Source: Podarcis bocagei
Lineage: Eukaryota
Direction: 5' to 3' (one strand)
Assembly (NCBI GenBank): GCA_964188305.1
Contig: OZ076893.1
DNA length: 64,000 nt
A model generated the notes under the pieces. The model saw only the letters and a program-made list of their open reading frames with translations, was not told where the DNA came from and made no database searches. How positions within the stretch are numbered: the stretch's first letter is position 1; each line of letters opens with the position of its first letter. Below, in pieces: positions 6,223 through 61,671 of the stretch. Made by a program: the position numbers and the translations under genes.

Positions 6223-7860
6223 GAGCCTTGCTCAGTGTGATTAGAAAAGTAAGCAAAGGCATCTTGCCTAATTTTTTCTCTCAGTGGGAGAGCAGAAGGC
6301 GTCCATTGGAATGCTTTTCCTAGCGGGTGGAATAACTAATATTCTTACATACAAATTTCCCCCTCAGTTATTCCACATTTGAAAGACTATTATGATTAGG
6401 TAGCCTGAGAACCTATTTAATTTTCCAGTAGTAGCTCTTTTTAAGTCTGGCACTCATTCCCCTCTCCCCCGCACAAAGTAACTTTTACAGTTTTTAAGAG
6501 GCATAAACTCCTGGGAATTAATTTAGTTGTGCTTTCTGTATCAGAGATCTTGTTCTGCAACCTGTAAAAATTATGCTTCATTTACTCAGAAGAAAGTCCT
6601 GCTGTGTTGAATGAAGCTTGTTCCCAGCTTGTGTGTACAGAACCCATAGCCTTATTTATGTACTGCTAGTCACTATGAGGCAATAAGCTCCGCACTGAAA
6701 AGTCACACCCTGACCACCAGAAATTCCTTCCTCCACCTCAGTTTTTTGATTTGATGACGTACATCCTTAGCCATATGGACTAGATACTTAGTTATAATGG
6801 AATATCTTATGGAGTACCAGTTGTGCAATCATAGGGCTGCCAAACGTCCGGGAATTGGGCAGGAAAATGGTGTCTGTGCAGATTTTCGGCAAATTGGCAA
6901 AATGTCCAGGGAAACCCAGCAAGGGGTGTGTGTTGATATATTTATTATTTTTTAAAAAACAACAACACACACGATCATTTAAAAATTCAAAAAAAGGCCA
7001 GAAACTTAGATTGGCTATGAACCAGTGTATAAATATTAAAAAAATTATGGACTATATCATCTAAACAGGGACACTAGTGCAATGGCTCTCCTTTTCCCAT
7101 GCAACTTCTTTGAACTCCTAAATCTGTTCTGGGGTCTCCCCCAGCACCCCAGAGCAGATTTAGAGGGCACAGTGGCATAACCGTCAACATTACCCAGACA
7201 AAAATCAGGATCTGAGAGCACGGCACTAAAATACATGTGTCTTTTGGTTCTGTACTCTCTCGCAAGCCTGCGGACCCGCACGACACCAAAATACGTGCAT
7301 CTTTGGTTGCTGCGCTCTTACCCAAGTCAGTGGCACCACTGCAAATGCCAGCACCAGCTGCAAGCGCTGGCTCATCCCTGCAATATTGCAGGCTCAAACC
7401 AGAAGCCGATATAGCTTCTGTAATTCCAGGAATGTCCCATTGAAATAGGGACTGTTGGAGTGTGTACTGGGGGAGAAGAGGGTAGCAAAGTTACACTGTG
7501 GAGCTAAATATTGTTGTGCTGGCATGACTGTTAGAGCTGAATAACACCTCAAAAAATTGAGAAACATTACAGCAGGGTTTCTGAGCTGGCACAGAATGGA
7601 TGTACAACCACACTATTTTCCTCTGCTAGGAAGAAAGCACCAGCAGTGGTGATATGTGTGGTGTGGACACCACTTTGACTCCTCTCCAAGGCAAGCATAA
7701 GCAGACCTGGAAAGTCCAGTGGAACTGCTTGGAAGATGCCATCACTGAAGATGCCTGTGTACAAGCTCGACGGTAACTATAGGAATGAGGCTACGCGACG
7801 AGATCATAAATCTCAGAGGTTGGGGACCTGAGCACATGTTGACCAAGTCCACAGAATGCA

Positions 7861-8277
7861 TTGCGTGTTGAGTCACAGTAGCCCCCCAATAATTCACACT
7901 TCACACATCAATTTTGTTTAAGGTTTTTTGGCATAATTTTGGCCACAACTTTATTCAAATACAAAAAATGTGAGTGGTTGCTTAGGCACTGGTTATGACT
8001 AACTGTCCTTGCCCTCAGGGACAGAGCTGGCCTTCCGGACACCGGCGGAAGCCAGCGTGGGAAACAAGTATTGGGTGAGAAATAAAGCCGGGAACCAGAC
8101 CATTATTTCTCACCCTCATGTTCCGGTGGGGCTTGCACGGCCCAAGTCCGACTCCGGGGACAAGGACGAAAGAATGGCAAGCCCCTGGATTTCCTTTAAC
8201 GGAATTCCCATTCACATCATTTGGAGGGGTAGGCACTTACCCCTCCAAGCACCAATTTAACCAGTGCCTAACCGCCA
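7861..8277 (-). repeat. Ngaro repeat B2 (3' terminal)
   Basis: Copy of B1. AATAAA on the minus strand at 7950-7955, with a GT-rich tract downstream. Confidence 0.93.
7950..7955 (-). terminator. Polyadenylation signal in repeat B2
   Basis: AATAAAGTTGTRGCC is conserved in all four families: 7950-7955 and 8757-8762 (minus), 19600-19605, 43094-43099 and 61579-61584. Confidence 0.7.
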
Positions 8278-8305
8278 ACCTTACAAGTTGTGACGATTTG
8301 CTACG

Positions 8306-8362
8306 TAGTAGGCAAAAATCAACTGGCACCAGCCAATCAGCCAGATGGCAAAATTCCTACTA
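8306..8362 (-). promoter_or_regulatory. ENE-like RNA element (U-rich internal loop flanked by helices) in the A2-B2 spacer
   Basis: The minus strand reads UAGUAGG-AAUUUU-[upper stem-loop]-UUUUU-G-CCUACUA. The same pattern occurs at 19165-19221 and 61183-61232. Confidence 0.6.
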
Positions 8363-8456
8363 GGCCCCCGCACCAAGGCGGACGACCCCATGACAGGCAA
8401 TAGCAAGGTCAAGCGAACAAAACAAAAAACCACCCTATAAAAGGGCGGGAGGGCGG

Positions 8457-8671
8457 GTGATCCGAGGAAAAACGGCCAAGAGGCCGTGCCAAAGTCTGGC
8501 CCCTGTATATATAGACTCTGACCCCTCCTCCGAAATGGTAACACTCAAAACACCCAGCAACCCAATTTAACCATTTAAGTGGCCAAGATTCAGCTAAATT
8601 TGCCTAGTCACAGGAGGGTGGCCTGTTCCCAACCGCAACACGTGCTCTCTGCTAGGGAGAACACGCTTTGC
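8457..8671 (-). repeat. Ngaro repeat A2 (internal copy, abutting B1)
   Basis: Copy of A1. It shares TTGC (8668-8671) with B1 at the junction. Confidence 0.93.
8506..8513 (-). promoter_or_regulatory. Candidate TATA box in repeat A2 (same motif in A1 at 15484-15491)
   Basis: TATATATA lies ~30 nt upstream of a pyrimidine-rich tract near the 3' end of A. TATTTAA sits at the equivalent position (19024-19030) in the solo unit. Confidence 0.55.
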
Positions 8672-9084
8672 GTGTTGAGTCACAGTAGCCCCCCAATAAT
8701 TCACACTTCACACATCAATTTTGTTTAAGGTTTTTTGGCATAATTTTGGCCACAACTTTATTCAAATACAAAAAATGTGAGTGGTTGCTTAGGCACTGGT
8801 TATGACTAACTGTCCTTGCCCTCAGGGACAGAGCTGGCCTTCCGGACACCGGCGGAAGCCAGCGTGGGAAACAAGTATTGGGTGAGAAATAAAGCCGGGA
8901 ACCAGACCATTATTTCTCACCCTCATGTTCCGGTGGGGCTTGCACGGCCCAAGTCCGACTCCGGGGACAAGGACGAAAGAATGGCAAGCCCCTGGATTTC
9001 CTTTAACGGAATTCCCATTCGCATCATTTGGAGGGGTAGGCACTTACCCCTCCAAGCACCAATTTAACCAGTGCCTAACCGCCA
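8668..9084 (-). repeat. Ngaro repeat B1
   Basis: Matches 7861-8277 at offset 807 with one mismatch (9021 vs 8214). AATAAA on the minus strand at 8757-8762. Confidence 0.93.
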
Positions 9085-9112
9085 TAGAGCCCTCAGCTCA
9101 CCGCCAAACCAC

Positions 9113-9706
9113 TCACAGCCCCAGCCAAGCCCTCAGCTTGGCCACCACCGCACCTAACCAAGCCTCATTCCCAGAAGCAGAAAGGTGCACACCATCAGCT
9201 CTAAAGAGAGCTGCCGCAGGATAGGAGATTTCATGGTGAAAAATCACCTCCCCACCCAGCTCCACAATCCTTTTAGAAACGGCCGCATTGATGCGCTTCC
9301 TGGCCCTTTCCGTGGCCACCGGGCAACGACTTCCCAACCAAACACGTCGTTGCAAAAGCTTAGACCAAAATAACTTGGCTGTGGGCACCATTTCCCGCAG
9401 TGTCTCCAGGTCAGCCAAAATTGCAGCACGTAAAGAGAAGCAGTCCATGGCAACCAGGTCATTCTCCCCCAGCTGTACCACAATAGCCGCTGGCGGCCCT
9501 TCCAGGAGCAACTGCCTTCGAATTCGTGGCAAAAACTCCGACCACCGCATTCCTCGTCTAGACAGCCAGGACACTCGAACATGTGAAGGAAGGCCGAGAC
9601 CTGGACCCAATCCGGACTGCCGTGCTGCGACACCAGCCCAATGGATGATGCTGTGCCCCACCATCCAGATGCGTACAGCTGACAAACCTGGGATAAAATA
9701 AACCAC
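9113..9706 (-). CDS. SGNH/GDSL-family hydrolase (esterase-like) ORF of the Ngaro element
   Basis: Block I IWMVGHS, block II RGMRW, block III VQLGEND and block V DGVHLS are all present in an intact 197-aa frame. Confidence 0.88.
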   Translation of the reverse strand: MVYFIPGLSAVRIWMVGHSIIHWAGVAARQSGLGPGLGLPSHVRVSWLSRRGMRWSEFLPRIRRQLLLEGPPAAIVVQLGENDLVAMDCFSLRAAILADLETLREMVPTAKLFWSKLLQRRVWLGSRCPVATERARKRINAAVSKRIVELGGEVIFHHEISYPAAALFRADGVHLSASGNEAWLGAVVAKLRAWLGL

Positions 9707-9729
9707 AAAAGGTATCAGACACTAACTGG

Positions 9730-10700
9730 TTAGCGAACATATCCCCTGAACGCATTCGACTTCCAGCGACCTAAATCCTGAATTCTAGCAGCTGACAAAC
9801 CCCAATGAGCTGCGGTCGTGGCAGCCCCTATCCTGAAGGAATGGGGGGCAAAATCAGAAGCTACTCCGCCACAGGCCCGAATAGCCTTACGCATCACCCC
9901 TGCGAACTGGTGCCTTGTAAGGGGTGACCCATTCTCGTGTAGAAGCAGCGGCCCATCCCCCTGGGCCCGCACCACTAGATACTTGTTAACATCCTTTACT
10001 GGGCAAGGGCCTGTCGCCCCAGTGGCAGGGAGCCGAATGAGGGCCCCCTTACCCCCTTGATCCGTTTTTGAATGCCTAATCATAATACCCACTTCCGCAG
10101 GGGATAGTCGCACATCCTGGAGTAGAAGGCCCCTGGAGCGACCATCTCCGTGGTCCTCCACCACTAATTCACCCACTCTCAACGCTCCAAAAAAGGCGAT
10201 TGAGAAGGCAGCTGAAAACAGGCGGGCCTCGTAATCAGACCAACACACCACCCGCAGCTTTTTGCGCATCTTGCTCAACAATTCAAAAGAGATGGGGCGA
10301 CGGTTAGGTGGCCGAGCAGGACAAAGTCGACCCCAACCCTCAAGGGCTTTGCGAACCACAAACTTCGCACAAGGATCTTTGTCAAAATATGTCTTACAGA
10401 AAAATGCTATAGCAGCTGCCTGCATCCTAAGAGTCTTGGCCGCACGCCCCATCTCAAATAAATGGGCCAAATATTGTAGCACCTGCGAGGAGGTGGGTGG
10501 GGCCCCAACTATTCCCCTAGCTGACTGGCGCAGAAATGCCAGAAAATCAGCCCAAGCTTTTCCGTAGGATCTCAGGGTAGAAGGGGAAACCGATGCCGCT
10601 ACTCCCTGAAAAACTAATTGCTGCCAAGGTTCCAGAGATGATCCGGGAAATATTCCGGACGAATCCGCGCCTCTGGAACCAGAAGTCTGAACCGCTCCAT
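9730..10700 (-). CDS. Tyrosine recombinase (YR); the frame is open upstream of the listed GTG start at 10482, to about 10720
   Basis: Catalytic set R (FFGALRVGEL), K (HSKTDQ), HxxR (HSFRIGAAT), W (LGRWKS) and Y (FRGYVR). The upstream in-frame segment VSPSTLRSYGKAWADFLAF resembles the N-terminal domain of DIRS/Ngaro YRs. Confidence 0.93.
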
Positions 10701-12815
10701 CTGAAAACGGGACAGAGCATCAGCAATTTCGTTAGACACCCCAGGAATAAAACGTGCGGAAAAAACTATATTACAACGTAAGCAATGCAGTACAAATGCC
10801 CGCAAAAGGGGGGACACCCTGGGTGAGCGAGATGACAGTTTGGCCAGCACAGTCACCACCGCCTGGTTATCGGTCCAGAAGCAGACACATCGGTTCCTGA
10901 ACTCCTCGACCCACAAGTGCACTGCCACTGCAATTGGAAAAAACTCAAGAAAAGTTAGGTCACGCGTAATCGCACTTCCCTGCCACCCAGCCGGCCAACG
11001 CTGAGCGCACCAACGACCTTTCCAGTAAAGACCGAACCCCAATGAACCTGCAGCATCGGAATGCACCTGGAAATCATTATGCAAGTTCAAAGTGTCTTGC
11101 CATAATGACACCCCATTGAATTCCTCCAGGAATTCGAGCCAGATGCGAAGATCAGCACGCACCCCACTAGAGAGGCGAACCCGATGATGCGGTGCCTTCA
11201 ACCCTACTGTGAGACGCGCCAGGCGTGAACAGAAGGGGCGCCCGGGAGCCACTACTCTGCAAGCGAAATTCAGATGTCCCAAAAGCGACTGGAGTTGCCT
11301 AAGCGACACTTTTCTTAAAGGAAGCAGCTCCTCAATGATCTTCCTGAGGGCGACCAACTTGTCCCCAGGCAAGCTGGAAGTTTGAGCCACTGTATCCAAG
11401 AGGATACCCAGGTAAGTAAGCTGGGTTGCAGGACCCTCCGTCTTGTCAGCGGCGAGCGGAACCCCCAATTCCTGTGTAAGGTCAGCAAAGGCCTGCAGCA
11501 ACACCGCGCAATCGCCGGTATCACTCGCCGAGGCCAATAAAAAATCATCCAAATAATGGGTGACTCCGCCCAAACCTGTTTTAAATTTTAGGGCCCACTC
11601 CAGAAAGGTACTAAATGCTTCAAAAGCGGCACATGCGACAGAACATCCCATAGGCATTGCCTTGTCAAAGTAATAACTGCCCTCAAATTTAAAACCAAGT
11701 AGCCAAAAATCCTCCGGGTGAATTGGCAAAAGGCGAAAAGCTGATTCGATATCGCATTTTGCCAATAAGGCTGCACGGCCAAACTTCCTGATCATCTTGA
11801 TCGCTTGATCAAGAGAAGCATACCTCACGGAGCAGAGCTCCGACGGAATAACGTCATTGACTGACGTGCCCGTGGGATGTGATAAATTATGAATTAAACG
11901 AAATTCACCAGGAGCCTTTTTTGGCACGATACCCAATGGGGATACATGCAAATTATGAAAGGGGGGATTATCAAAAGGGCCAGCCATACGCTGCATGGCT
12001 ACCTCTTTCGCAATCTTCTTACGAGCAACCTGAGGCAGTTCGCGAATTGACTTTTGATTAGCGGGGTTCTGTGCCACGGGAGGCATGGCTACAGGAATTC
12101 GAAAACCTACGGAAAAACCATTGTTCAGATAGACCGCAGCCTCCCTATTGGGGTAAGACTGCAGCCATAATTGCAGGGGCTGCAAGCGAACCGGGGTGTA
12201 TGCCAAGGAGGTCAATGCGTTATTTCCCTGCTGTAGCAGGGGAGGGGGTTGGTTTTTGGGTTTGCTGAGAACCCCCTCTGCCACCTCGAAAGGGCCGGCG
12301 ACCACCAAAACAAGAAGAAGCAGCATGCGAACCATTGCACCTCTCGCATACATGGGCAAATCTGCACCCTTGCCGCTGACAGGAACCTTTGTTAAAGTCC
12401 CAGCATAGGAGCCGGCGGCCAGTTCTAGAGGCTGCCGGTTTGAATTTCTGCTGTTCTGGTGCTTTCTTATCGATGAGTGGGGCCACGTGGGTGGTCCAGA
12501 CATCGAGATCCCTACGATCCCAACGGGCTGTAGGAATTTTTGCCGCTCGGCGCCTGAAATTCTCATCATATTTGATCGCAGCCTTCTCACCAGCTTTGGT
12601 GAAGGCAGAGCGAACAATGGATAAGTAAACAAACAAGTGAAGAGACCTCCGAGGATAGGCTGCCACAACAACACCAGCGAAGACTTGAAAACAATCGAGC
12701 CAATGCTCGAATGTCCTGTCTCCAATGGCGGCACCAGGGCGCTTCTTGGAAGAAGGCCCTTTCTCCTGATCCTCTGACGGCGGGGCCAATTTGAAAATGT
12801 CAACGTAACGGCCAT
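10614..12815 (-). CDS. Reverse transcriptase / RNase H (DIRS/Ngaro type); true start uncertain
   Basis: RT motifs SPLGIVPKK, FRLIHNLS, KCDIESAFRLLP, MPMGC, HYLDDFL and TYLGI. RNase H motifs HSDAAG, LEFFPI, WTDNQAVV and ADALSR. No stops or frameshifts. Confidence 0.95.
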   Translation of the reverse strand: MAVTLTFSNWPRRQRIRRKGLLPRSALVPPLETGHSSIGSIVFKSSLVLLWQPILGGLFTCLFTYPLFALPSPKLVRRLRSNMMRISGAERQKFLQPVGIVGISMSGPPTWPHSSIRKHQNSRNSNRQPLELAAGSYAGTLTKVPVSGKGADLPMYARGAMVRMLLLLVLVVAGPFEVAEGVLSKPKNQPPPLLQQGNNALTSLAYTPVRLQPLQLWLQSYPNREAAVYLNNGFSVGFRIPVAMPPVAQNPANQKSIRELPQVARKKIAKEVAMQRMAGPFDNPPFHNLHVSPLGIVPKKAPGEFRLIHNLSHPTGTSVNDVIPSELCSVRYASLDQAIKMIRKFGRAALLAKCDIESAFRLLPIHPEDFWLLGFKFEGSYYFDKAMPMGCSVACAAFEAFSTFLEWALKFKTGLGGVTHYLDDFLLASASDTGDCAVLLQAFADLTQELGVPLAADKTEGPATQLTYLGILLDTVAQTSSLPGDKLVALRKIIEELLPLRKVSLRQLQSLLGHLNFACRVVAPGRPFCSRLARLTVGLKAPHHRVRLSSGVRADLRIWLEFLEEFNGVSLWQDTLNLHNDFQVHSDAAGSLGFGLYWKGRWCAQRWPAGWQGSAITRDLTFLEFFPIAVAVHLWVEEFRNRCVCFWTDNQAVVTVLAKLSSRSPRVSPLLRAFVLHCLRCNIVFSARFIPGVSNEIADALSRFQMERFRLLVPEARIRPEYFPDHLWNLGSN

Positions 12816-13911
12816 TCAATATCCTAGACCTAAGCTTTGTAGCCAAGTGTGAACCAGGGATAATGTCCCTGGCCGAGTTGGTAGAGACCTTAGTGTCAGG
12901 TACTAGCACGCCATCCCTACACTCTTGAACAGCACCGTACTTAGCACGGTGCGTATTTGCCCTCCGTTCCCAGGCCCACCTCGGGAGCCCTGAAGCCGTC
13001 TCGCCAAAAACCCAATACAGTTCCATAGGTTTATCAGCCTCATCATCAGAGCTAGATGACGTACCCGTATATGATGAAGAAGAGTCCGCCCTTCTACGTT
13101 TGGCATGTTTTCGGGAAGATCTTCTGCGATGACGCTTTCCCCCCAAGGATCTCTTGGCCGGGACTGGTAAGCTATCTTCCATAGAAGAGGCCGAGTCAGA
13201 ATTTGGCTGAGAAGCACCCGGATCCTGCGCTACAACTGGAGCAGAATAAGAGGAAGATGTGTCGTCCCTCCTCCGTTCGGCGTGCCTCCGGGAAGACCCC
13301 TTGCTGTGACATTTTCCACCTGAAGACCTTCTGGCAGGAACTGGTAAACTGTCTTCAACAGAAGACTCAGAATCGGGATTCGGCTGAACTAGACCTGAGG
13401 CCGGTGGAGAAGAAACAACACGTGAGAGACCAGAACCGGACGCCACTTCGGCAGGGGGCTGGGCAATCCTGCCTCTACGTGCAGAAGATGACGAAAGGTT
13501 CCCTCTTCCTGAGGCCCTTCTGGACGAATAAGCTGACCTCCGTGTGCGGCCACGAGCAGCGGGTAAGTTACGGGGCCGGGTTAACTGAGGGTCACTTCCC
13601 ACAGCCCCAGTTAACAACCCTTCTCTCCCATTCTCGCTAGATAACGACGATGCCGGAGACGACGCCCCCACCGGATGAGGCATCCCTGCCGATGTGGAAG
13701 GCTGACTGGAACATTGTTGCAGAAAACCGTCCATTTGCTCCGCGAAACGAGACAAGGCAGCTGGATCACCGGCCATGCTAGCCACCAGGGACTGCACCCA
13801 CCCCATTGGCGGTCTCGAAACAGGTGAGCGCAGCGCCTGGGAAGGGCCTCTAATAGGCCGTTTTGCGGTGGAAGATGAGCCAGGGCGGGCTGTGGCTTTC
13901 TTTGGAGCCAT
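12220..13911 (-). CDS. Ngaro ORF1 (gag-like) with C-terminal Cys/His zinc-finger motif
   Basis: Open frame of 563 aa from the ATG at 13911 (MAPKK...). It has an S/R-rich N-terminal half and the C-terminal motif CWDFNKGSCQRQGCRFAHVCERCNGSH, and it lies upstream of the RT. Confidence 0.85.
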   Translation of the reverse strand: MAPKKATARPGSSSTAKRPIRGPSQALRSPVSRPPMGWVQSLVASMAGDPAALSRFAEQMDGFLQQCSSQPSTSAGMPHPVGASSPASSLSSENGREGLLTGAVGSDPQLTRPRNLPAARGRTRRSAYSSRRASGRGNLSSSSARRGRIAQPPAEVASGSGLSRVVSSPPASGLVQPNPDSESSVEDSLPVPARRSSGGKCHSKGSSRRHAERRRDDTSSSYSAPVVAQDPGASQPNSDSASSMEDSLPVPAKRSLGGKRHRRRSSRKHAKRRRADSSSSYTGTSSSSDDEADKPMELYWVFGETASGLPRWAWERRANTHRAKYGAVQECRDGVLVPDTKVSTNSARDIIPGSHLATKLRSRILNGRYVDIFKLAPPSEDQEKGPSSKKRPGAAIGDRTFEHWLDCFQVFAGVVVAAYPRRSLHLFVYLSIVRSAFTKAGEKAAIKYDENFRRRAAKIPTARWDRRDLDVWTTHVAPLIDKKAPEQQKFKPAASRTGRRLLCWDFNKGSCQRQGCRFAHVCERCNGSHAASSCFGGRRPFRGGRGGSQQTQKPTPSPATAGK

Positions 13912-15434
13912 ACCTACTATTTTGGAAACAAAGTTGACAGTCAAAAAGGTCCCACAAATCAAAGACAGCCAAGCAAAGCCAACGAGCGTCAGGGGGAACT
14001 GGCTATGGCCAGTCAGTTACCCCCCAACAAGAGCACCACTGTTGACTTTATCTGCAACTATATAAAAAAAAAAAAAAACCTTGTACCTAATTGGAAACTA
14101 ACTAATACTGTATGACTTAATAAATTCAAGTAGCGAGTAAAATATCTATTTACGCGATTTCTTTGAAATATGCACTCAGTGCACCCCCTCAGGCCGGCCA
14201 GGAGGGAGCACTAGCCGGTGGCAATGCAATTAGAGGAGGTGCAGAAACCGGCTAAGCCACCACAGGTAGGCTGGCACTCCGTGGTAGGCTCACTTGCGTA
14301 TGACAGGTGCTAAAATAATAATTACTTTCAACTCCCAAACAGCCAGGTTAAACTAACAGGCTAAATAAAAGCAAAAGCAAAATCAAAATTAAATTAAATT
14401 AAATTAAATAGGTGCAATGCCCAGGCCAACCAGCAGATGGCTCTAGCTTGCCTGGCTGAGTCAACAAGAGGGAGATGCAATTACTTGCTGAGCCACTGGG
14501 GGAGCTCAAGCGCCTGCAAGCTGCAATAGCTCCCAGCGGCCACAAGAGGGCCAGCCGACCTCAGCAAGCAGCACCAGCGCTCTCTCCGACCTGTGCGACG
14601 TTCAACACGGCGAGCCCTGGGCGATACAGCCAAAATCGCCCACAAACAAAAACAGGCCGCGCCGAGGCCTCGGAGGCCCGCGCGGGCTCCGCGCCGACCG
14701 CTGCAACGGCGGGCAGCGACGCCAGAAAAAACGCCCCAGAGCCCAGGCGAAAGCGGGCAGCCACAGCGCCTCCTAATTTATTTATTTATTTTTCTTCCCT
14801 ATTCTCCGACGATAGCGCCGGAAAGCGGGAGCGCTGCAGCGGCCGCTGCCAACCCGGGGCCGGTGGCGCTTCACCCCCACACACCGGAACAACCAGGTAA
14901 GCCCTTTTAAACGTCCAGGTCCCTGGCTCGCTCGTGGGGGGGCGGGTCACTTCGGCGGTCGCCGCCGCCGCCACGCCGCGTTCCGAGGCCCGGGCTTCGA
15001 CCGGGAGTGCGCCGATGGGGGGGTGTAAGGGGAAAGGGACCCAGCTGCGCTCCGTGATTCGGGCAATGGGCCGTGGGTTCCCCGAGCCTAGTAAACGGCC
15101 CCAATCCTTCCCACCCCCAAGAAGAACCAGGTTTTTTTTTTTAAAAAAAAAAAAACCGCGTTGCCGGGGAGGCAAGGCCTCCCCCGGGCTGGGGGGGGGT
15201 CCCCACCCTCAGCCTCTGCACAAACGGGGGTAGCTCGGGAAATACAATAAAATTCGGAAAAACCCCCAGGGCCCAACACAAGGAAACAAGAGCGAAGAAA
15301 GTGGGGACGGAAAGAATACAAAGAAGGGGGAGGGTGAAGGAGAGAGAGGAGGCCAAAGCGGCTAGAAGAATATGAATTAATTAGCAAATAATTAGCAAAT
15401 ACAACCGGCTCAAGCGCTGGCTGCTCCTTGATCC

Positions 15435-15649
15435 GTGATCCGAGGAAAAATGGCCAAGAGGCCGTGCCAAAGTCTGGCCCCTGTATATATAGACTCTGAC
15501 CCCTCCTCCGAAATGGTAACACTCAAAACACCCAGCAACCCAATTTAACCATTTAAGTGGCCAAGATTCAGCTAAATTTGCCTAGTCACAGGAGGGTGGC
15601 CTGTTCCCAACCGCAACACGTGCTCTCTGCTAGGGAGAACACGCTTTGC
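15435..15649 (-). repeat. Ngaro repeat A1 (5' terminal, promoter-bearing)
   Basis: Matches 8457-8671 at offset 6978 with one mismatch. TATATATA at 15484-15491. Confidence 0.93.
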
Positions 15650-17148: not shown

Positions 17149-17495
17149 GGGACGCGGGTGGCGCTGTGGTCTAAACCACTGAGCCTCTTGGGCTTGCCGA
17201 TCAGAAGGTCAGCGGTTCAAATCCCCAAGACGGGGTGAGCTCCCATTGTTCGGTCCCAGCTCCTGCCCACCTAGCAGTTCGAAAGCACATCAAAGTGCAA
17301 GTAGATAAATAGGTACCACTCTGGTGGGAAGGTAAACGGCGTTTCCGTGCGCTGCTCTGGTTCGCCAAAAGCGGCTTAGTCATGCTGGCCACATGTATGT
17401 ATGCCGGCTCCCTCGGCCAGTAAAGCGAGATGAGTGCCGCAACCCCAGAGTCGTCCGTGACTGGACCTAACGGTCAGGAGTCCCTTTACCTTTAC
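17149..17495 (+). mobile_element. Sauria-type SINE
   Basis: GGGACGCGGGTGGCGCTGTGG head, tRNA-like B box GGTTCAAATCC, (ACCTTT)n tail, TSD TACTTAAAATAA. Confidence 0.9.
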
Positions 17496-18865
17496 TTAAA
17501 ATAAATATTGGCTCTTAGGAAATAAATCTTTAATATTGACTCATCAAATGAGCAAGCTAAAGTATCATTTCCTAAATCTGTGATCCACAAAACACTTAGG
17601 GCAGATCTGCAATGACTGCAGCATCATATGTTAACTTGCTCACACCAATGAGCCATCATAGAGCCAACATCACATATCTTCACATGTCACATCAGATGCC
17701 ATATTTTGCAATGGAGTTCATTCACATATTGAGGGTGCAAACACATAGCCATGTTCATCTGTGCTTCCTACAAGCATTGGTAGTTTAGTTATTTCATTGC
17801 TCTGTGCAGATGCATTCCACTTTTACCTGAAAAAGTTGGTTATTCAGGGACATGCAATGCAGCAAAATAGTTTAGCTGGCCATGTAAGAGCATGCAACAT
17901 GCTTGAAAGTGTGCTGGATTCAGGTAGCTTCCCAATATCATGGAGACTGCTTCATTGATAACCATCTTCAGGATGTTTCGGCACTGAAGTTGCTCCACAT
18001 GATTGTTTGGTTTGCACACCTGAACAGTGCATTAGGAAAGGCTATTGCCTCACCGTGTTTCAGTGTGCTGATTATTATAATATGTCAAAAGTAACTAAAT
18101 GCCTTTATCATACTTTACTTATTTTTTTTTTTTTTTTTTGGGGGGGGGGACTTAATCTTGAGTACATCTAAGAATGGGTCTATGTCTTTGCCTCCACTAT
18201 GAGATGCCCAGAACCTTAAATTGTTTTTGACAATTTCCTCTTATAAGGCTCAAATCTGAATTCTCACATTAAATAAACTGTCAAAACCTAAGCCTGTTTA
18301 CATGTAAGTAACTCCCACAACAGTCAATGAGACTCGTGTCCTATGAGAGTGTTCATAGAACTGCAGTCAAGCTCTTTTCAGGGACTATTGAAAGCCAATA
18401 ATATACCAAAGTATGTTATTGTAGGTTGAATAAAAACTTTGACAGATGGACCACTATAAATTGTTCAAGGTAGAATCTGCTGAAAGCATATTTTAAAATG
18501 AGGAATGGGCTATAGGCATCTATAGGAGGAGAGGAATAGCGCCCCCCCCCCCGGTGAACCGTAATCCTCAGATTACCCAGTTTCCCTTTTTAAAAAAAGT
18601 AGATTATTTCCCTTAGGATGCCCCTATTTTTACAGGAGAAATGTTGGAGAGTTTGGAGTTATGCAACCCTTGAGCAAAGAATAAGTAACTATACAACCTT
18701 AAGAAGACATCTGAAGGCAGCCTTGTATAGAGAAGTGTTTTTTTTTTAATGTTTTATTGTGTTTTTATATATGTTGGAAGCCATCCAGAGTGGCTGGGGC
18801 AACCCAGTCAGATGGGCAGGGTATAAATATTAAATTATTGTTATTATTATTTTGGAATAGGACAT

Positions 18866-19701
18866 AGCGTGTTCTCACTAAAGGAGAGCACGTGTTGCGG
18901 ATGGGGCCAGACAAAGCACCCTGCAGTGACTAGGCAGGTTGGAATTAAGGAGCCTAGTGTTGGTTGGTGTTTGCGTTGCTGGGGCAAATTTGATGTTGCA
19001 AATTTAGGGGTGGGATCAGAGGATATTTAAGCAGGGTCCACAGCAGGCTACTTTCTCTTTCGCTGTGGACATCGGATCACCCGCCCGCCCGCCCTCCCTT
19101 GTTTGGGCTTGTGCCTTGACCTTGCTATGCCTGTCATGGGGTTGTCCGCATTGGTGCGGGGGCCTGGTAGGAATTTTTCCAATTGGCTGATTAGTGTGTG
19201 CCTTTTGGGTTTTGCCTACTGCTTAGCAAATCGTCACAACTTGTAAGGTTGGCGGTTAGGCATTGGTTTAAATTGGTTGGTGGAGGGGTATGGATTGGCT
19301 GTGCCTGCCCCTCCAATGCTGTTGCTGCACGGGAATTCCGTTAAAGGAATTCTGGGGCTTACCATCCCCTCGTCCAAACCCCTGGAATCGGGTGCGGGCC
19401 ACGTAAGCCCCTAGGAGCATGCAGGGAGAAGCTGAGGGTCTGTGTCACAGCTCCTTTTATCCCTGAACTTGTTCCTCCACACTGGCTTTCGCTGGAATCC
19501 GGGAGCCAGTGCTGTCCCCAAGGCGGGGGGCGGGGCGGGGCAGGGGAACGACAGATAGTCATAACCAATGCCTAAGCAACCACTCACAATTTGTATGCTA
19601 ATAAAGTTGTGGCCAAAATTATGCCAAAAACCTTAAACAAAAATTATGTGTGATGTGTGAGTTATTGGGGTAAGGGTGTTTTGGGGGACCTCAGCACGCA
19701 A
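18866..19701 (+). mobile_element. Solo A-spacer-B unit of a related Ngaro subfamily
   Basis: Begins AGCGTGTTCTC and ends CAGCACGCAA, like the termini of the full element. It is colinear with the reverse complement of 7861-8667, 836 bp long, with no element ORFs. Confidence 0.9.
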
Positions 19702-20100: not shown

Positions 20101-23100
20101 TGAGTCCAAGAGTTTTCTGTACAATCATCTTCTTTCTGTTGCCTTCATTTTTAGAAGACGGCCTGGCCCAGCAGCTCACAGTCCAGAATGTTACATATTC
20201 CATTCCAACACAGCTTCTAATTTACTCTTGGGAATCTCACAAACCGTTACAATACCTGGACCTCCCATGGAGGTCCAGAGAAAAAAGTTTGCAGAAACAT
20301 CTTCATGCATGACCCCCAAGCATGCCTCCGGTAATGGGTCTTGACTGTGATCCAGTCTCCTCTGGGCCTAGGGGAAGTATCCACTTCCCCCAGGCTTCGG
20401 CCCCAGGGCCAGCTCAACCGTGCAACAACCCAGGTGGCTCCCTTAGGAGTGCCATTTTTTCTGAGGACCCATAAAGCAGCATGCAGTCATAGAGCTGTGA
20501 CTGAGGTGCCCTCAGATTCTTTGCAAAAGGCCCACAGACTCTCACCTCTCTAATCGCATGTATCTGCCTGTGATTCCTCAGCATCTTCTGCAGTCCTCCA
20601 AGTGGTCCTGGGTTTTGCCTCTCAGAGGTGATTGCCAACATTAGGGACAGGAAAATGTCTTGGGCCTGCCCCACACTTACCAGAGGCACCAGCTTGCAAA
20701 GGCCAACGTCGCCCCGACATTGGGAGGAGCCTGGGGCAGAGCCGAATGCAGCAGCTGTGTAGCTTCAATGGCGGGTGGCTCCTTCTTCGCCTCCTCCTGG
20801 GGCCACCACCAGTGAGGCTGATTCAACTCTCCTTTCCCTCGAGGGCAGAAGGAGAAGGAAAAGGAGTCATGCTTGGCTCCATGTTTCGCCTCCATGTTTT
20901 TTGGATTGGGGGCAGCACCTACCCCAAAAAGTGGGTGGCAAAAAGGGGCTCGGCCCCCAGGAGCTGGTGCCCCTGAGACCTACCATTACCAGATGCCAAC
21001 CCTTCCCATTTCAGCTTCCATTGCTTACCCTCCAGTCTGGTTGCAGCCTATTCTGCGTTTCCTCACTTGGATAACCTTCTACAGTGGTACCTCGGGTTAC
21101 GTACGCTTCAGGTTACATATGCTTCAGGTTACAGACTCCGCTAATCCAGAAATAGTACCTTGGGTTAAGAACTTTGCTTCAGGATGAGAACAGGAATCGT
21201 GCTCTGGCAGCACAGTGGCCGCAGGAGGCCCCATTAGGTAAAGTGGTGCTTCAGGTTAAGAACAGTTTCAGGTTGAGAACAGACCTCCGGAACGAATTAA
21301 GTACTTAACCCGAGGTACATGCTTTATTTTCTTGCAGCCAGCAGACTCCATGGATTTCCGGCTCCTTTCCCTGACCTTCCCTTATCTCATCCACCTGAGC
21401 AGCTTTCAACAGCATAAACATATTCTTTTGTGTGGGCATGCAAAGAGGAGCCTGAATCGATGCCACCCACCCACACTCGACTCCCTGAGATATGAGAAAG
21501 ATCTGAAATACAGCCTTGGGTGACATAAATTTTAGATACGGGAGTGGCTCCAATTCATCAGGCCCATCGGCAACAGATGCTGCTATGAGTTGAAGTTTTG
21601 CCCAAGTATGAAGCTCCATGTATTTTTGCATTGAAAGGAAGCCCTGTTTCATAGGGTAGAACCTCTGCTCATGATCATAGCTGTCAACGTTTCCCTTTTT
21701 TAAAGGGAAATTCCCTTATTCCGAATGGATTCCTCGCAGGAAAAGGTAAAAGTTGACAGCTATTCTCATGATGGTGGTGGCAGACTCTTTTTTGTCGTTT
21801 TGAAAATTGACATTTTACTAGCAGAGGAAACACATTCAAGATTTTTGTAGTATGTTTTTTGGAAGGGAAGTAGGATACACACACAGAAAATGAGGCCTTT
21901 CATTTTCATGATGAAATTCTGGATAGATTGCCACCTGCCAAGTATATTATACGTCGCTGTTAAATTATTTTTCATCTCTCCAGTAATGGCTGATTAGCTT
22001 TGCAGAAACAAGAACTGTACGTGTAGCACAGTTTCATTCAGCATTTATAATCTCTTTCCAACCCCCTCCTCACATTTGCCATCTTTTGCTTTAACGGGGA
22101 ATTCAAAAAAACAAAACAAAAACAAGACACACTGTAAGCTATTTGTGCAAACGAATAATTATGATTGTCACAGATTTCCAAGTCTAATTAGATATAATAA
22201 TGTGGAGCTGGGGAGCTTTGTTTACATGTTGCAAAACATGGAAATGTGTGCTCTTTGCCGGGAATTTCTTAACTCATCAATAATAGTTTTGCATGTACCT
22301 TTTTTTAAAAAAAAATCAGAATTTATTTTTACAGCTTAATTAGCTGTAAATAAATAAAGATGCTATAAATACCAAGCTCGTAGCAAAATTAGAGGCACAT
22401 TAAAGATAACGCACTTTGGGGACTTGCAGATCAGTTAGCAAGTCGCTGGAAATTGCAGAGGGAACTGGCAGCTGCTTTGAGTCAGCATAGCAACCCAAAA
22501 TGCTGTAGGTACAGCAATGTGTGCACTGATCATTTAAAGGCTCACTTTACCTTATTTACATTTTCAGCCCCTTTGGGATTTAAATAGCCCTGCTCTGATT
22601 CAGGAAGAAGAAGGAAAACATGCTGTACTAAACAGCTTGCTTGGCCTCTCCTGGCAGTAGAGGAATTTTGCTAGGTTTTCTTGAATGTAAATGAATGACG
22701 ACTTGTTTACTCATTATGTTTCTTACTTTATGCCCTGGTGATTTTTCTCCTCCGCTTAAGTTTTGGAGACTTAATATCATTTGTTGTCGTTCAACATGGC
22801 AAAGGATAGACAACAAATTTCTGGAGCTCAATTTCCCCTGCTTCCTTATCCTCTGGGCCCAATATTTATCACGATCGTCTCGGCAGAGAGGAGCACTGGA
22901 AAACCACTCTAGTCCTTTCCTTGAAGGACACTGAGTTCAGGGTTTTCCCAGCTCACATGTGCGCTAAGAAATTTGAGGCATATCCTATGAACTTTGGGAA
23001 ATCACACACTTGTCCAAGGTTTTGCTAGAAATTTTAGACAAGCTCACCTGTTAGGCTTTGGATTTCAAAGCCCTGGTGGCTAACTCACCTCACAGAGAAG

Positions 23101-27115: not shown

Positions 27116-27431
27116 GGGACGCGGGTGGCGCTGTGGCTTAAACCACAGAGCCTAGGACTTGCCAATCAGAAGATTGGTGGTTCGAATCCCTGCGTCGGGG
27201 TGAGCTCCCGTTGCTCGGTCCCTGCTACTGCCAACCTAGCATTTCGAAAGCACGTCAAAGTGCAAGTAGATAAATAGATACCGCTCCGGCGGGAAGGTAA
27301 ACGGTGTTTTCGTGTGCTGTACGCTGGCTCCCTCAGCCAGTAAAGCGAGATGAGTGCTGCAACCCCAGAGTCGGCTGTGACTGGACCTAATGGTCAGGGG
27401 TCCCTTTACCTTTACCTTTACCTTTACCTTT
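27116..27431 (+). mobile_element. Sauria-type SINE (internally deleted)
   Basis: Same head, (ACCTTT)n tail, TSD TATGATAACATG. Confidence 0.9.
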
Positions 27432-39132: not shown

Positions 39133-39320
39133 NNNNNNNNNNNNNNNNNNNNNNNNNNNNNNNNNNNNNNNNNNNNNNNNNNNNNNNNNNNNNNNNNNNN
39201 NNNNNNNNNNNNNNNNNNNNNNNNNNNNNNNNNNNNNNNNNNNNNNNNNNNNNNNNNNNNNNNNNNNNNNNNNNNNNNNNNNNNNNNNNNNNNNNNNNNN
39301 NNNNNNNNNNNNNNNNNNNN
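39133..39320. other. Assembly gap
   Basis: Run of N. Confidence 1.
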
Positions 39321-42442: not shown

Positions 42443-43193
42443 TTAGGCATTGGACGCGGGTGGTACTGTGGTCTAAACCACAGAGCCTAGGGCTTGCTGA
42501 TCAGAAGGTCGGCGGTTCGAATCCCCACAACGGGGTGAGCTCCCGTTGCTTGGTTCCTGCTCCTGCCAACCTAGCCGTTTGAAAGCACGTCAGGTACAAG
42601 TAGATAAATAGGTACCGCTCCAGCGGGAAGGTAAACGGTGTTTCCGTGCGCTGCTCTGGTTTGCCAGAAGCGGGTTAGTCATGCTGGCCACATGACCCGG
42701 AAGCTGTCTGTGGACAAACGCCGGCTCCCTCGGCCTATAGAGCGAGATGAGCGCCGCAACACCAGAGTCATCCGTGACTGGACCTAATGGTCAGGGGTAC
42801 CTTTACCTTTAAGCCTTGTTTATGGGAGGGGAGGTTGTTGCCTCCACCTGCCCCTCCTCGTTAAGAGTATCCCATTAAAGGGATCCGGGGGGTGGTTCCT
42901 GTCCAAAGCCTGGGTGTGGGCTAGGGCCATGTCACAACCCCATTGGGGACCCTGGGGGTGCTCTTAATTAATGTATATCATAGGGGGGGCTATCGGTGGT
43001 TGACACTTCAGAGACTTCCAGCAGATGGGCAGGAGTCAGGATATAGTCTGTCTTCACCCAAATGCCTAAGTCCAACCGCTCACATCTGTAACCAATAAAG
43101 TTGTAGCCTAATTGATCCCATTAACCCAACATATTCGTGTTTGTGTGTTTATTTCTGGGGGGGAACTGCTGGGCCTGGGGCTTCACCATGCAA
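42443..43193 (+). mobile_element. B-repeat-only Ngaro fragment (fourth family), interrupted by a Sauria SINE
   Basis: TTAGGCATTGG, then the SINE, then GAGGGG...CCCCTC, ATCCCATTAAAGGGAT, AATGCCTAAG and AATAAAGTTGTAGCC, ending ATGCAA. Confidence 0.72.
42452..42810 (+). mobile_element. Sauria-type SINE nested in the Ngaro B fragment
   Basis: GGACGCGGGTGG head, GGTTCGAATCC B box, ACCTTTACCTTT tail. Confidence 0.9.
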
Positions 43194-47533: not shown

Positions 47534-47881
47534 GGGACACAGGTAGTGCTGTGGGTTAAACCACAGAGCCTAGGGCTTGCCGATCAGAAGGTCGGTGGTT
47601 CAAATCCCCACGACGGGGTGAGCTCCCATTGTTTGGTCCCAGCTCCTGCCAAGATATCAGTTCGAAAGCAGGAAGTGTAAGTAGATAAATAGGTACTGCT
47701 CCGGCGGAAAGGTAAACGGCGTTTCCATGTGCTGCTCTAGTTTGCCAGAAGTGGCTTAGTCATGCTGGCCACATGACCTGGAAGCTGTACGCCGGCTCCC
47801 TCGGCCAGTAAAGCGAGATGAGCGCCGCAACCCCAGAGTCGGCCACGACTAGACCTAATGGTCAGGGGTCCCTTTACCTTT
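47534..47881 (+). mobile_element. Sauria-type SINE
   Basis: Same family; TSD TAACATGCTTTGT. Confidence 0.9.
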
Positions 47882-50800
47882 TAACATGCTTTGTAGTTAA
47901 GACATGTTGCACATGGCTGCATTGTAACATGTAGTTTGGCTCTACATGATCCATTACTTCATAATGTTTCCCCCCAATACTGAGGTCTAATTGGAGCTGG
48001 CCTTCTAACCAACTCTCATCAGAAGTTCTCCAGGGCTGTTTTACTTTTAAATCTTCTTTGTTATTATGGTCGACATTTTGTTTACTCCAAAGCACGTTGG
48101 GAATAATTGGTTAGGATGCACTGCATCACGAAGGCACAGATGGCAGGCCAAAGTCTCTGCTGATCTGAAGACAGTGTTAGCATTTTTTTAAAAGAGAGAG
48201 AAAGAAAGAAAATAAAGTAGAAAGTAGGGGGTGTTGAATAGGGCCAGCAATGGTAGCACTGTACAAAGGATGTTGTGGGTGGTCCATTGGGAAAGTTGTT
48301 AGGAATCTGCGATATGTCCACTACAATCAACAGAAAGACACAATCGCGCCTCCGTAGGGAATTGGGAGGGAAGAACTTGTTTAAATAAAATCGCAGGGTT
48401 GTCAGAATGTTAAGCTAATTCTCTAATGTTCTGTGCATTGTCTGGGGAGCTTAGGCATTGCATCATTTGATGTACTGAAGTAGTGACAAAATATTTTAAT
48501 AGCAGTGCGTTTGGAAAGTGTTAACATCTTTTTGATCGTTTGAAAAGACTTGACTGCGTGTGGCGAAAGTAAAAAAAGAAAGAAAGAAAATGCTGTTCGA
48601 GAAAAGCAACTCGTTCCATAGGCTGCTTTGTTTTCTGCTTTAGATAACTGCACAACGTGATTCTACCAGTCTCTGGGACATATTTATGCCAGTGGTTACG
48701 TATAAGTCATTACCATTACAATGCAACAATGTCCGAGGCTTGTTTTGCTGTTCTGTTAAGTGTCCCTTCAAGGGCTCAACAATGGAAGTGTTTTAACTTA
48801 CAGGATGTATTGTCAAGTTTTTGTTTTGTTGAAGCTGCGTGACAGGCTGGAATTCGGCAGGAGAAGTTTTTTCTAGCCTGCAGGTAATGCAAGAGACAAT
48901 AATTCTGCTCAGTCATATGTATTCCCAGTTCTAATATACAGTGGGATTCCTTCTCAGGTATTCTCCCATGTAGGTACCAGCTCAGTAGACATGGGTGGAA
49001 CTGTTAGTTTTGGTTTTTCTCAGTTTCTCTTTTTTCCAATCTTAAGTTTATTTCTCCAAATTTCCATAACAGTTCCCATTAAAAAAATTTCTTGTGAACA
49101 TTTATCCACATCTTAGTGATAATTTCCCGTAATATCACATTTCCCCAAAGCAATGTCCCATAATCTAATGCATTTTCCTATGTTCTTTTCACTAATATTT
49201 TTATCTTATGCAAACTTTAGGATATGAATTTTTGCACACATTGCAGGCTGGATAGCTGTATTGCAAAATTCAGAGAACTGCAAATTTTGATAGATGGCTG
49301 TGGTTCAGTTCATGTGTTGTTTTTGGAAACAGTGAATTAGTTAGGTTCACCTTTAAAATACCCCAAAGCAAAAATGTCTCAGTCTGGCACCAAAAAGATG
49401 ACTAAGAGCACTTCCACCTGTCTTACGACTTTCCCCTGGGAAAATCTGCTGCTTACAAATGAATCAGAACAAATGTCAATTGGTTTTTCTATGATGTTGT
49501 TCCGATTCAGTAATTCTAACTCACTTGGACTTACTTCTGAACAGGCATTCTGCAAAACACACATAAATCCCATATACTTCATCAGGCATTTGGTTAAGTC
49601 AGTGTTTCTCAAGCTTGGGTCCCCAGCTGGACTACAACTCCCACCATCCCTAGCTTGCAGGACCTATGGTCAGGGATGATGGGAGTTGTAGTCCAAAAAC
49701 AGCTGGGGACCAAAGTTTGAGAAACAGTGGTTGCCTTCATTGTCAGAGTGCTTCTTGTGAAGATGAATCATTGATGGACTTCAATGTTCTTTTGATGGAT
49801 AGATGCCTCCAGATAATTTGACACAGTTCTTTTGTATCTTTTAAAAAGTGTATACTTCTTTTATTTTTGGCAGTTAAAAAGATGTGACCAGGGCGTAACC
49901 AGGCACCAAAAAATGTAATCAAAATACCCTAAAATGAAAACCCAAATATAAAACTCAGCTGTTAGAAAGCATCTCCCCAGTAAATGTGTAGTTAAAAAAT
50001 GAGCCACGTTATATCACCATGATAGGATTTCTCTCCCCTCCCTTTCATTGGTTGCCACATATGGGAGTAAGAAAATATTAAAGCAATAACAATGTCATAC
50101 CCCCCCATTCCTGTGATGATGTGGGGAAGAGAAACACAGGTCAGCAGCTCACACAAGTTTGCCTGTAAAATGCAGTCTGGAAGGGTGGGATTAAGATGTG
50201 CTGAGGTCCGAAACTGTGCCAAATTTAAGAGGCCTCATAGTGTTATCCCCAAAATGTGTAAAAACCAAACCTCACCTGCCACTGTTTCACAAATTATGGA
50301 CACCTGGCCTAATGATATATATTTTTAAAGATAAATTATGGTTATTTATGAACAGATTTATAAACACAACCATTAAGCATACTTTGGTCATATCTAAACA
50401 ATAATGTTTGTTTTAGAGTCCCCATTTCCTTTATTTATTTAACCAATTATGCCACATTTGAAATTTAAGGAGCAGGGATTTTTAAAAAGACCTCTTGTAA
50501 TCTGAGACCCTAAACCATAGTTTACTTAGTTTGTGTGCAAAGCTGGCACTGAGTTTGGGCCTAAGGCAGGTATGGAGAACCTGTGGACCTCAGAAGGTTG
50601 TTGGACTCCAACTCCCATCCACTTCAGTCAGCACAGTCAGTGGTCAAGGATGATGAGAGATGTGGCCTTGCAATATACAAGAGGCTACAGTGTCCTCACC
50701 CCTGGCCTGAGGGAAGTACTCCTGATTCTGGTGTAAATTTTCTGCAGCCAGTCTTGAGTTCAGTTTTGTGTTGGGACATGACATGAAATGAGGATTCCAT

Positions 50801-59470: not shown

Positions 59471-59559
59471 CATAGCTGTCAACTTTTCCCTTTTTTAAGG
59501 GAAATTCCCTTATTCCGAATAGGATTCCTTACAAGAAAAGGGAACAGTTGACAGCTATG
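59471..59559. mobile_element. ~89-bp hAT-type MITE (copies at 21676-21764 and ~61726-61814)
   Basis: TIR CATAGCTGTCAAC/GTTGACAGCTATG; 8-bp TSDs ACATGGGG here and CTCATGAT at the 21676 copy. Confidence 0.85.
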
Positions 59560-60868: not shown

Positions 60869-61671
60869 TGGTGCAATAAAGACTCTCCTCGCTGCAAGAG
60901 AGGGGAGTGGTTGTGACCGGGAGCCGGACTCCGCTTCAAGCAGGGGGCGTTAGCCCCCTGCCTCCCCCTCACCTGGCTGGCGCCCACGCCCAGGCACCCA
61001 ACCAGGTGCCTTCAAGGGGGCGTGTACAGAAGCCTAAATTGCTGTGGCGCCAGCCTCCCGGTCTCACTTTTCGTCGTCCCGTCGCGAGTCACTCACCCTC
61101 CACTCCCTTAGAGCAGGGTTTCAGTTTTCTTTTGGCCTTGCTATGGACCTTAGGTTGGTCGCCCTGGTTGTCCGGGGGGCCTGGTAGGAATTTTTCCATT
61201 TGGCATTAGGCTTTTTGGTTTTTTCGCCTACCTCGTAGCAATCGTCACAACTTTCATGGTATTGGTGGGTAGGTTAGGCATTGGAATAATGTGTTGTGGT
61301 GTCGAAGGGCTAGGTGTGGCCATCGCCTACGCCTTCAATTTTTGGGTATTCCGTTAAAGGAATCTGGCGGTCGTGTATTCTGTCCGATGCCTGCGTGGCG
61401 GGAGGCCATGGCAAGACCCTTGGTGACTTCAGAGGAGAGCTTATAGTTGGATTAGCATCAACAGGCTCCACCTACTGGTGAATAAACCCCCTTGTTTTAG
61501 ACTCACCCCTCTCCGAGTGGGTGGAGTCAACTGATGTAATCCAATGCCTAAGCCAATACCTTTTCACTTGCTGTAATCAATAAAGTTGTGGCCTTTTCTT
61601 GCCCATTAACCTTATATCACGTGTCCTTGTGTTTCATTCCCCTATGCGGGGATCGGGTCCTCGAACCACAA
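60869..61671 (+). mobile_element. Solo A-spacer-B unit of a more divergent Ngaro family
   Basis: Shares the ordered motifs CCTTGCTAT, GGGGCCTGGTAGGAATTTTTCCA, GCAATCGTCACAACTT, TTAGGCATTGG, TTCCGTTAAAGGAAT, CCAATGCCTAAG and AATAAAGTTGTGGCC. Length is ~803 bp; the ends are inferred. Confidence 0.8.

Follow-up and report, generated by a model that had tools for sequence, protein, structure and literature searches.

ENEs are the best-understood means by which an RNA protects its own poly(A) tail, and in 2025 the mobility of a plant retrotransposon was found to be boosted by one. By definition of the class, the third strand is a poly(A) tail or A-rich tract, and the ENE-like elements already listed come from plant, fungal and slime mold transposons and from stickleback retroviruses (PMC7583470). 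The KSHV PAN ENE forms five U-A-U triples and carries an AU bulge at the base of its loop (PMC13541005). In the ENE of the Evade retrotransposon, the U-tracts and the flanking G-C pairs are both essential, and the element, which is placed in the long spacer before the terminal repeat, raises RNA stability as well as mobility (PMC12501189). Plant and fungal transposon ENEs (for example, TWIFB1 and Arabidopsis Evade/Copia93) are mostly double-domain and are carried by LTR retrotransposons or hAT transposons. Vertebrate ENEs, such as those of MALAT1 and MEN-beta, clamp an A-rich 3' end within a U-rich internal loop; in MALAT1 this is an encoded A-rich tract left after RNase P cleavage, and the U-tracts are broken by C/G resets. 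Two identical poly(A) signals in terminal repeats are dealt with by retroviral upstream poly(A) enhancers and by RexRE-type folding in HTLV-1, where unique upstream sequence precedes the 3' copy only and folding joins distant elements.

No paper linking Ngaro or DIRS with an ENE or triple helix was found in the searchable literature, and we know of no cis-acting RNA signal described for this class of element. An earlier note on the window (the whole 64,000-nt stretch of Podarcis bocagei DNA analysed here) had proposed that the unique spacer of a Ngaro retrotransposon encodes an ENE-like element. Here we compare that locus with the systems above; the predicted juxtaposition of the module and the poly(A) site by two long-range helices, the presence of the module in a second split-repeat family and the contrast with a gecko Ngaro are new here.

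A Ngaro element with a single-copy spacer

Element A is organised in the order A1, ORFs, B1, A2, spacer and B2 (Table 1). Its ORFs comprise an unassigned upstream ORF, a reverse transcriptase (RT; 12815-10614; Pfam RVT_1, 4.6e-12), a phage-integrase-type tyrosine recombinase (10482-9730; Pfam Phage_integrase, 5e-6) and, in addition to these two, an SGNH/GDSL hydrolase (9706-9113; Pfam Lipase_GDSL). No Pfam match to a methyltransferase was found in element A. RT and tyrosine recombinase occurring together without a methyltransferase match, and a recombinase followed by split direct repeats (A1 ... B1 A2 B2), are characteristic of Ngaro, and the earlier identification of the element as a Ngaro is retained. 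The same split-repeat layout was present in a second lizard locus (L032) and in a gecko element (L031). No Ngaro coding sequence was found outside element A in the 64,000-nt window.

Repeat borders were set by position-by-position comparison at fixed offsets, together with blastn, and the single-copy spacer emerged with exactly the 179-nt borders that had been claimed for it. It is crossed by short ORFs only, the longest being 87 aa with a GTG start, which agrees with its description as non-coding. Both B copies carry the same AATAAA, as the earlier note had stated, and its view that the module is confined to RNAs reading through B1 holds in that the spacer is the single-copy segment before B2. 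A run of 188 Ns (39133-39320; gap or masked) and an unrelated repeat family with four direct copies that are 64-92% identical (17187-17495, 27152-27415, 42487-42812 and 47570-47883) also occur in the window.

Table 1 Features of element A and of the related module copies in the window.
Feature	Position	Strand	Evidence
Full-length Ngaro retrotransposon (element A)	7861-15649	-	Pfam RVT_1, Phage_integrase and Lipase_GDSL matches; repeats
A1 repeat; TATA-like box 15491-15486	15435-15649	-	Offset identity
B1 repeat; AAUAAA 8762-8757	8668-9084	-	Offset identity
A2 repeat; TATA-like box 8513-8508; 4-nt overlap with B1	8457-8671	-	Offset identity (offset 6978, equal to 15435-15649)
Unique A2-B2 spacer, 179 nt	8278-8456	-	No identity at either repeat offset; blastn matches itself only
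Three-way-junction module, copy A: P1 8406-8401 / 8303-8298, P2 GC hairpin, ENE-like arm	8298-8406	-	MFE folds, pair counts
ENE-like arm, copy A	8306-8362	-	MFE folds and alignment
GUCACAACUU, 5' strand of H1; once in element	8285-8294	-	Folding, consensus fold
UUAGGCACUGG, 5' strand of nested H2 (partner 7992-7982)	8261-8271	-	RNAalifold consensus, 8 sequences including gecko
B2 repeat; AAUAAA 7955-7950	7861-8277	-	Offset identity (offset 807, equal to 8668-9084)
CCAGUGCCUAA, 3' strand of H2	7982-7992	-	RNAalifold consensus
AAUAAA (7955-7950) overlapping AAGUUGUGGC (7951-7942), 3' strand of H1 in B2	7942-7955	-	
Copy B: solo-like A-spacer-B unit, related family; module 19122-19229; AAUAAAGUUGUG ~19600-19611	18863-19670	+	
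Copy C: module of third family; U5/U6, the longest U-tracts; AAUAAAGUUGUG ~61579-61590	61138-61241	+	

A structured module shared by four lacertid lineages

The module, a three-way junction of ~110 nt, has three parts: the outer UUGCUA/UAGCAA helix, the GC hairpin and an arm in which opposed U-tracts lie between a lower and an upper stem. In copy A, which scores 138 bits with covariance model R1, the lower stem of the arm pairs 8362-8356 with 8312-8306 and the upper stem-loop spans 8348-8319, leaving AAUUUU(G) (8355-8349) on the 5' side of the loop and UUUUUG (8318-8313) on the 3' side. The three strings on which the proposal had been based were located at 8362-8306 (minus), 19166-19220 and 61183-61232, and the outer helix was present in all three window copies. 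The spacer core had been described as the best-conserved part of these elements, and this was borne out: element A and copy B are 72% identical over 835 nt and 88% identical over the 144-nt core, and copy C can be aligned with element A over ~100 nt of core only. The earlier note spoke of three Ngaro families; conservation of the module across diverged families was upheld, but element A is the sole complete element of the window, copy B being solo-like and copy C a fragment. For the C-type, the missing context was supplied by L032, where the module lies within the A2-B2 spacer of a split-repeat Ngaro family; the recombinases of this family and of element A share ~60% identity. Palindromic MITE-like repeats of ~88 nt (CATAGCTGTCAAC...GTTGACAGCTAT) were also seen at 21676-21763, 59471-59558 and 61726-61813, one of them ~140 nt downstream of the poly(A) signal of copy C.

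Protein matches put the source genome in or near Podarcis muralis. Lizard loci fetched with the hydrolase and recombinase ORFs were scanned by HMM and then with covariance model R1, recovering 13 intact module copies and one split copy. These represent four diverged lacertid lineages (A, B, C and d types) and 12 distinct sequences. Upper stems range from an irregular stem of ~30 nt to a 5-bp hairpin, the latter being all that is found in the d-type (CCUGC-AUUG-GCAGG). Copies with this minimal upper hairpin occur at L007:42104-42200, L001:17877-17968 and L004:12878-12975, each preceding its own B-like domain and AAUAAAGUUGUG, and these units may be non-autonomous. At L007:8653-9152 (minus), a C-type module is apparently split by a ~380-nt insertion in the apical loop, and its halves still match the covariance model (36 and 31 bits).

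The same three-way junction, with the U-tracts unpaired, was obtained in the MFE structure of all 12 distinct copies folded singly, and the U-tracts remained unpaired when folded in 440-520-nt contexts; for copy C, the fold had a z of -4.1. In the covariance-model alignment of the 13 copies (A3), 89.7% of cells contained standard pairs, compared with 37-49% in slid controls in which partners were moved by 1-3 columns. None of 500 shuffles equalled the observed number of paired cells, the changes on both sides of a pair (counted as pairs or cells) or the covariation score, though with about four independent lineages among the 12 distinct copies these statistics represent consistency rather than formal proof. 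Covarying stems were recovered in this alignment, with compensatory changes at four of the six pairs of the lower stem (P3), where every cell is paired, and also in the inner part of P2. Lower-stem variants include GGUAGG/CCUACC, AGUAGG/CCUACU, GGGAAGG/CCUUCCC, GGAAAGG/CCUUUCC and GGGAAGA/UCUUCCC, and the changes among them comprise U-A to A-U, G-C to A-U and an A-U / G-U / G-C series. There were 43 G-U cells, and pairing fell from 89.7% of cells on the sense strand to 78.5% on the antisense strand; the fold is therefore assigned to the sense strand, as RNA or plus-strand cDNA. Taken together, these results leave little doubt that the unique A2-B2 spacer is occupied by a structured cis-RNA domain that is conserved and belongs to the sense strand.

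A strict scanner, which required a lower stem (6 bp or more) closed by two G-C pairs, a run of four or more U on either side and an upper stem of 3 bp or longer, gave a background of 0.1 matches per shuffled window over both strands, and nearly all of its matches across 335 kb of lizard and other loci were these modules. One small stem / U-run / hairpin / U-run / stem match, at 14632-14652 (minus) in the 5' part of element A, is probably due to chance. In A-type copies only, an upstream GGGUGG (8437-8432) can pair with CCAUCU of the upper stem (8343-8348), giving an alternative ENE-like configuration that uses an upstream U6GU4 tract; being specific to this type, the pairing was judged incidental.

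Split repeats and the module were absent from L002, L006 (Phrynocephalus) and L008, despite the presence of SGNH ORFs, and the module was also absent from L009-L011 and L025-L030, which are distant Ngaro elements or short contigs. More distant Ngaro elements from metagenome or Logan contigs likewise lacked it. A search of metagenome contigs with the TAGCAAAWCGTCACAACTT pattern returned 13 loci, two of them labelled human-gut, all of which were dismissed as chance 19-mer matches (~16-22 bits by covariance model). In viral contigs, neither a match to the TAGCAAAWCGTCACAACTT pattern nor a relative of the recombinase protein was found.

RNA reads of the species from two single-cell and two bulk runs were mapped on 7700-9200. 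With 6-39 reads per run, and no molecule ends, poly(A) loose ends or joints among them, the reads are too sparse to place 3' ends. Coverage was highest on the conserved core, in part from other families (loose ends at 8276, 8305 and 8414), and X24 had a strong excess of first mates on the plus strand, as expected of sense RNA provided that the library was stranded in the usual way. At 8319 and 8323, the X21 and X23 reads had the letters of the family consensus (T>C and C>A on the plus strand), which restore the CCA/UGG base of the upper stem. These reads therefore derive from other copies, and the two odd letters of the window copy are private to it.

Predicted long-range helices at the poly(A) site

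Immediately 3' of the module, CACAACUU is complementary to AAGUUGUG, which lies just 3' of AAUAAA in B; this pairing is referred to here as H1. In element A, CACAACTT occurs a single time, at 8292-8285 and 3 or 4 nt past P1, and its complement, AAGTTGTG, directly follows AATAAA in both B copies. The A, B, C and d lineages share the same order, namely module, GUCACAACUU (CACAACUU), a B domain of ~290-370 nt and AAUAAAGUUGUGGCC. In an RNAalifold consensus of eight sequences, including the gecko, all ten H1 pairs were formed in all eight, and the same consensus contained a nested helix, H2 (UUAGGCAUUGG with CCAAUGCCUAA), with some compensatory changes. Covariation is silent on H1 itself, as this helix never varies. 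Folding of the stretch that starts at the module and ends 22 nt 3' of AAGUUGUG placed H1 in the MFE structure of L032C (base-pair probability 1.00), the gecko (0.94) and L003a (0.66), and not in that of copy A (0.51), copy C (0.42) or the decayed copy B (0.00). As the 5' strand pairs equally well with AAGUUGUGGC of B1 (8749-8758) or B2 (7942-7951), an exchange of one partner for the other could have a bearing on which poly(A) signal is chosen, or on template switching as the element replicates.

H1 covers the last two bases of AAUAAA. Together, H1 and H2 are predicted to close a B domain of ~300 nt, so that the B2 AAUAAA would come to lie directly 3' of the junction. The sequence distance from module to poly(A) signal is 340-370 nt, and their closeness in space would depend on these predicted helices. 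Cleavage is likely at a CA ~21 nt past AAUAAA; were this site used, the tail would start ~13 nt beyond H1 and might be within reach of the loop, which lies ~13 bp away via P1 and P3. The predicted placement of the poly(A) site beside the module strengthens an ENE-like reading of the arm.

The Ngaro of the gecko Eublepharis macularius (L031) is young, with repeats that are 98-99% identical, and retains GUCACAACUU and AAUAAAGUUGUGGCC as well as H1 and H2. Its A2-B2 spacer is a pyrimidine/U-rich stretch of 47 nt (L031:12242-12288) directly 5' of H1, and the three-way junction and ENE-like arm are absent from this element. The module is therefore restricted to certain lineages rather than being a general feature of vertebrate Ngaro, and is either an addition in lacertid-type lineages or a loss in the gecko.

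The U-rich loop and its possible functions

ENE criteria were taken from the reviews PMC7583470 and PMC13541005 and from PMC12501189. The opposed U-tracts proposed for the loop were found in every copy: its 5' side reads AA-UUU and its 3' side UUU..G without exception (13/13), and the next U on each side is usually present. Tract lengths are U5/U6 in the C-type, ~U4/U4-5 in the A and B types and U3/U4 in the d-type, giving a predicted capacity of ~3 triples in the d-type, ~4 in the A and B types and 3-5 overall. The loop is flanked by G-C pairs, with CC/GG starting the upper stem (A, B and C types; the d-type was read by hand) and two successive G-C pairs ending the lower stem, from which the U-tracts are separated by the conserved AA (5') and G (3'). 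An AAUAAA lies 290-370 nt downstream of the module in every lineage, as expected of an ENE by position. The claimed ENE architecture was thus upheld as regards the stem / opposed U-tracts / stem arrangement and the G-C closure, but the invariant core amounts to three U per side, and similarity to curated Rfam models, which may not include every ENE, was not found: no match reached the gathering score in the window, and at E <= 10 the A, C and d types returned noise only. The loop was also considered as an Sm site (AAUUUUG), a reading that was rejected because the B, C and d types do not conserve the G and because the motif is part of an internal loop.

Among the described systems, the arm resembles the KSHV PAN ENE in being a stem-loop with a U-rich internal loop, opposed U-tracts and flanking G-C pairs, in having extra unpaired nucleotides at the base of the loop and in its location in the 3' part of a polyadenylated RNA. 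The extra nucleotides have a precedent, since the base of the PAN loop carries an AU bulge (PMC13541005). In contrast to the five triples of PAN, three U per side are invariant in the lizard copies and 4-6 are present in most; the lizard arm also differs in the AA/G preceding its lower stem and in being one branch of a three-way junction, and its host is a cellular retrotransposon rather than a herpesvirus lncRNA. No sequence or covariance-model similarity to the PAN ENE was detected. With the plant and fungal transposon ENEs, the module shares a location in the non-coding spacer that separates the last ORF from the terminal repeat, but it is single-domain and carried by a reptile Ngaro, and its role as an ENE is predicted. 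Similarly, it shares with MALAT1 and MEN-beta a vertebrate host and a U-rich internal loop, predicted here to clamp an A-rich 3' end, but in contrast to MALAT1 an ordinary AAUAAA signal and tail are expected. Retroviruses, including HTLV-1, offer a possible analogy in that they and the lizard Ngaro both have identical poly(A) signals in their terminal repeats, but retroviral and HTLV-1 enhancer folding lacks the U/U internal loop of the lizard arm.

We consider it plausible, if still tentative, that the arm works as a poly(A) clamp. According to this model, H1 and H2 would close the ~300-nt B domain and bring the B2 poly(A) site beside the three-way junction, the tail of the B2-polyadenylated RNA would fold back into the U-rich loop of the module, and the docked tail would form ~3-5 U-A-U triples and so be shielded from deadenylation. 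RNAs ending at the B1 signal would be left unprotected, as they contain neither the module nor the 5' strand of H1. The analysis itself establishes the fold with its conservation, covariation, strand and position, and the complementarity of the long-range helices; that the tail docks, that the RNA is thereby stabilised and that B1 and B2 ends are told apart is what we infer. A more specific version, in which H1 and H2 deliver the nascent tail to an ENE-like clamp in the sole single-copy segment of the 3' region, as a two-part device that solves the problem of duplicated poly(A) signals and was gained after the split from the gecko, is speculative and, as a whole, somewhat unlikely.

The same long-range helices could instead serve the choice of poly(A) site, with the module acting as an upstream U-rich enhancer of 3' processing that is brought to AAUAAA by H1 and H2 only at B2, so that B1 is read through and B2 is used; by analogy, this would follow the logic of retroviral U3 upstream elements that separate LTR poly(A) sites. 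The spacer and the 5' strand of H1 lie upstream of B2 only, H1 overlaps the last two bases of AAUAAA, the U-tracts are invariant, and the gecko retains H1 and H2 next to a plain U-rich spacer of 47 nt without the ENE-like arm, which suggests that the ancestral job was at the poly(A) site itself. However, a simple U-rich enhancer has no need of a covarying stem / loop / stem arm with opposed U-tracts, and UGUA is present in the A and B types only, and we regard site selection as an unlikely function. A role in replication or packaging is also rather unlikely, if slightly less so. In this case the reverse transcriptase encoded by the element, or the product of the unassigned upstream ORF, would recognise the junction, which could flag the 3' region as the place for cDNA synthesis to begin or for templates to be switched, with the U-rich loop as a protein contact or tail-positioning site. 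Such a role would be consistent with the strong conservation across families with recombinases just ~60% identical, with conservation of the whole junction (P1, P2 and P3) beyond the U loop, with conservation of the flanking AUCGUCACAACUU as far as the gecko, and with a position directly ahead of the terminal repeat, a site at which priming signals are found in retroelements; we know of no primer site described for Ngaro. Nevertheless, the gecko family has replicated without the module, as its near-identical repeats attest, and nothing points to a specific protein or primer.

Two further readings dispense with an RNA function and both are far less probable. An element acting as DNA, whether a transcription-factor site (GGAATTTCC resembles a Rel/NF-kB site) or an inverted repeat bound by the recombinase, could account for the invariant GGAAUUU, for the d-type sequence GGAATTTCCC and for stem arms that form an inverted repeat. 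We consider this very unlikely, given that G-U pairs are tolerated and antisense pairing is markedly worse, that the arms are 34-50 nt apart with an intervening sequence of variable length, and that the expected recombination junction is B|A rather than the spacer; furthermore, the unit is not palindromic, because both of its T-tracts are on one strand. That the hairpin arose by chance and hitch-hikes in young copies has some basis in several A-type copies being near-identical and recent, but this is hardly tenable for a fold that is common to four lineages with unalignable flanks, that shows compensatory changes and that stands against a scanner background of 0.1 per shuffled window.

Were the proposed two-part device of long-range helices and clamp to operate, tail protection would be confined to replication-competent RNAs that read through B1, together with short RNAs started at the A2 promoter or transcribed from solo A-spacer-B units, and the clamp would be the first ENE known from a tyrosine-recombinase retrotransposon and from the genome of a reptile. 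Even without poly(A) binding, the module together with H1 and H2 constitutes a well-supported cis-acting RNA domain. A reptile ENE would carry the mechanism into a tetrapod genome and, through the little-studied Ngaro/DIRS order, into a different mode of replication; reading the module as an ENE offers a testable answer to the question of how elements with split direct repeats handle their duplicated poly(A) signals.
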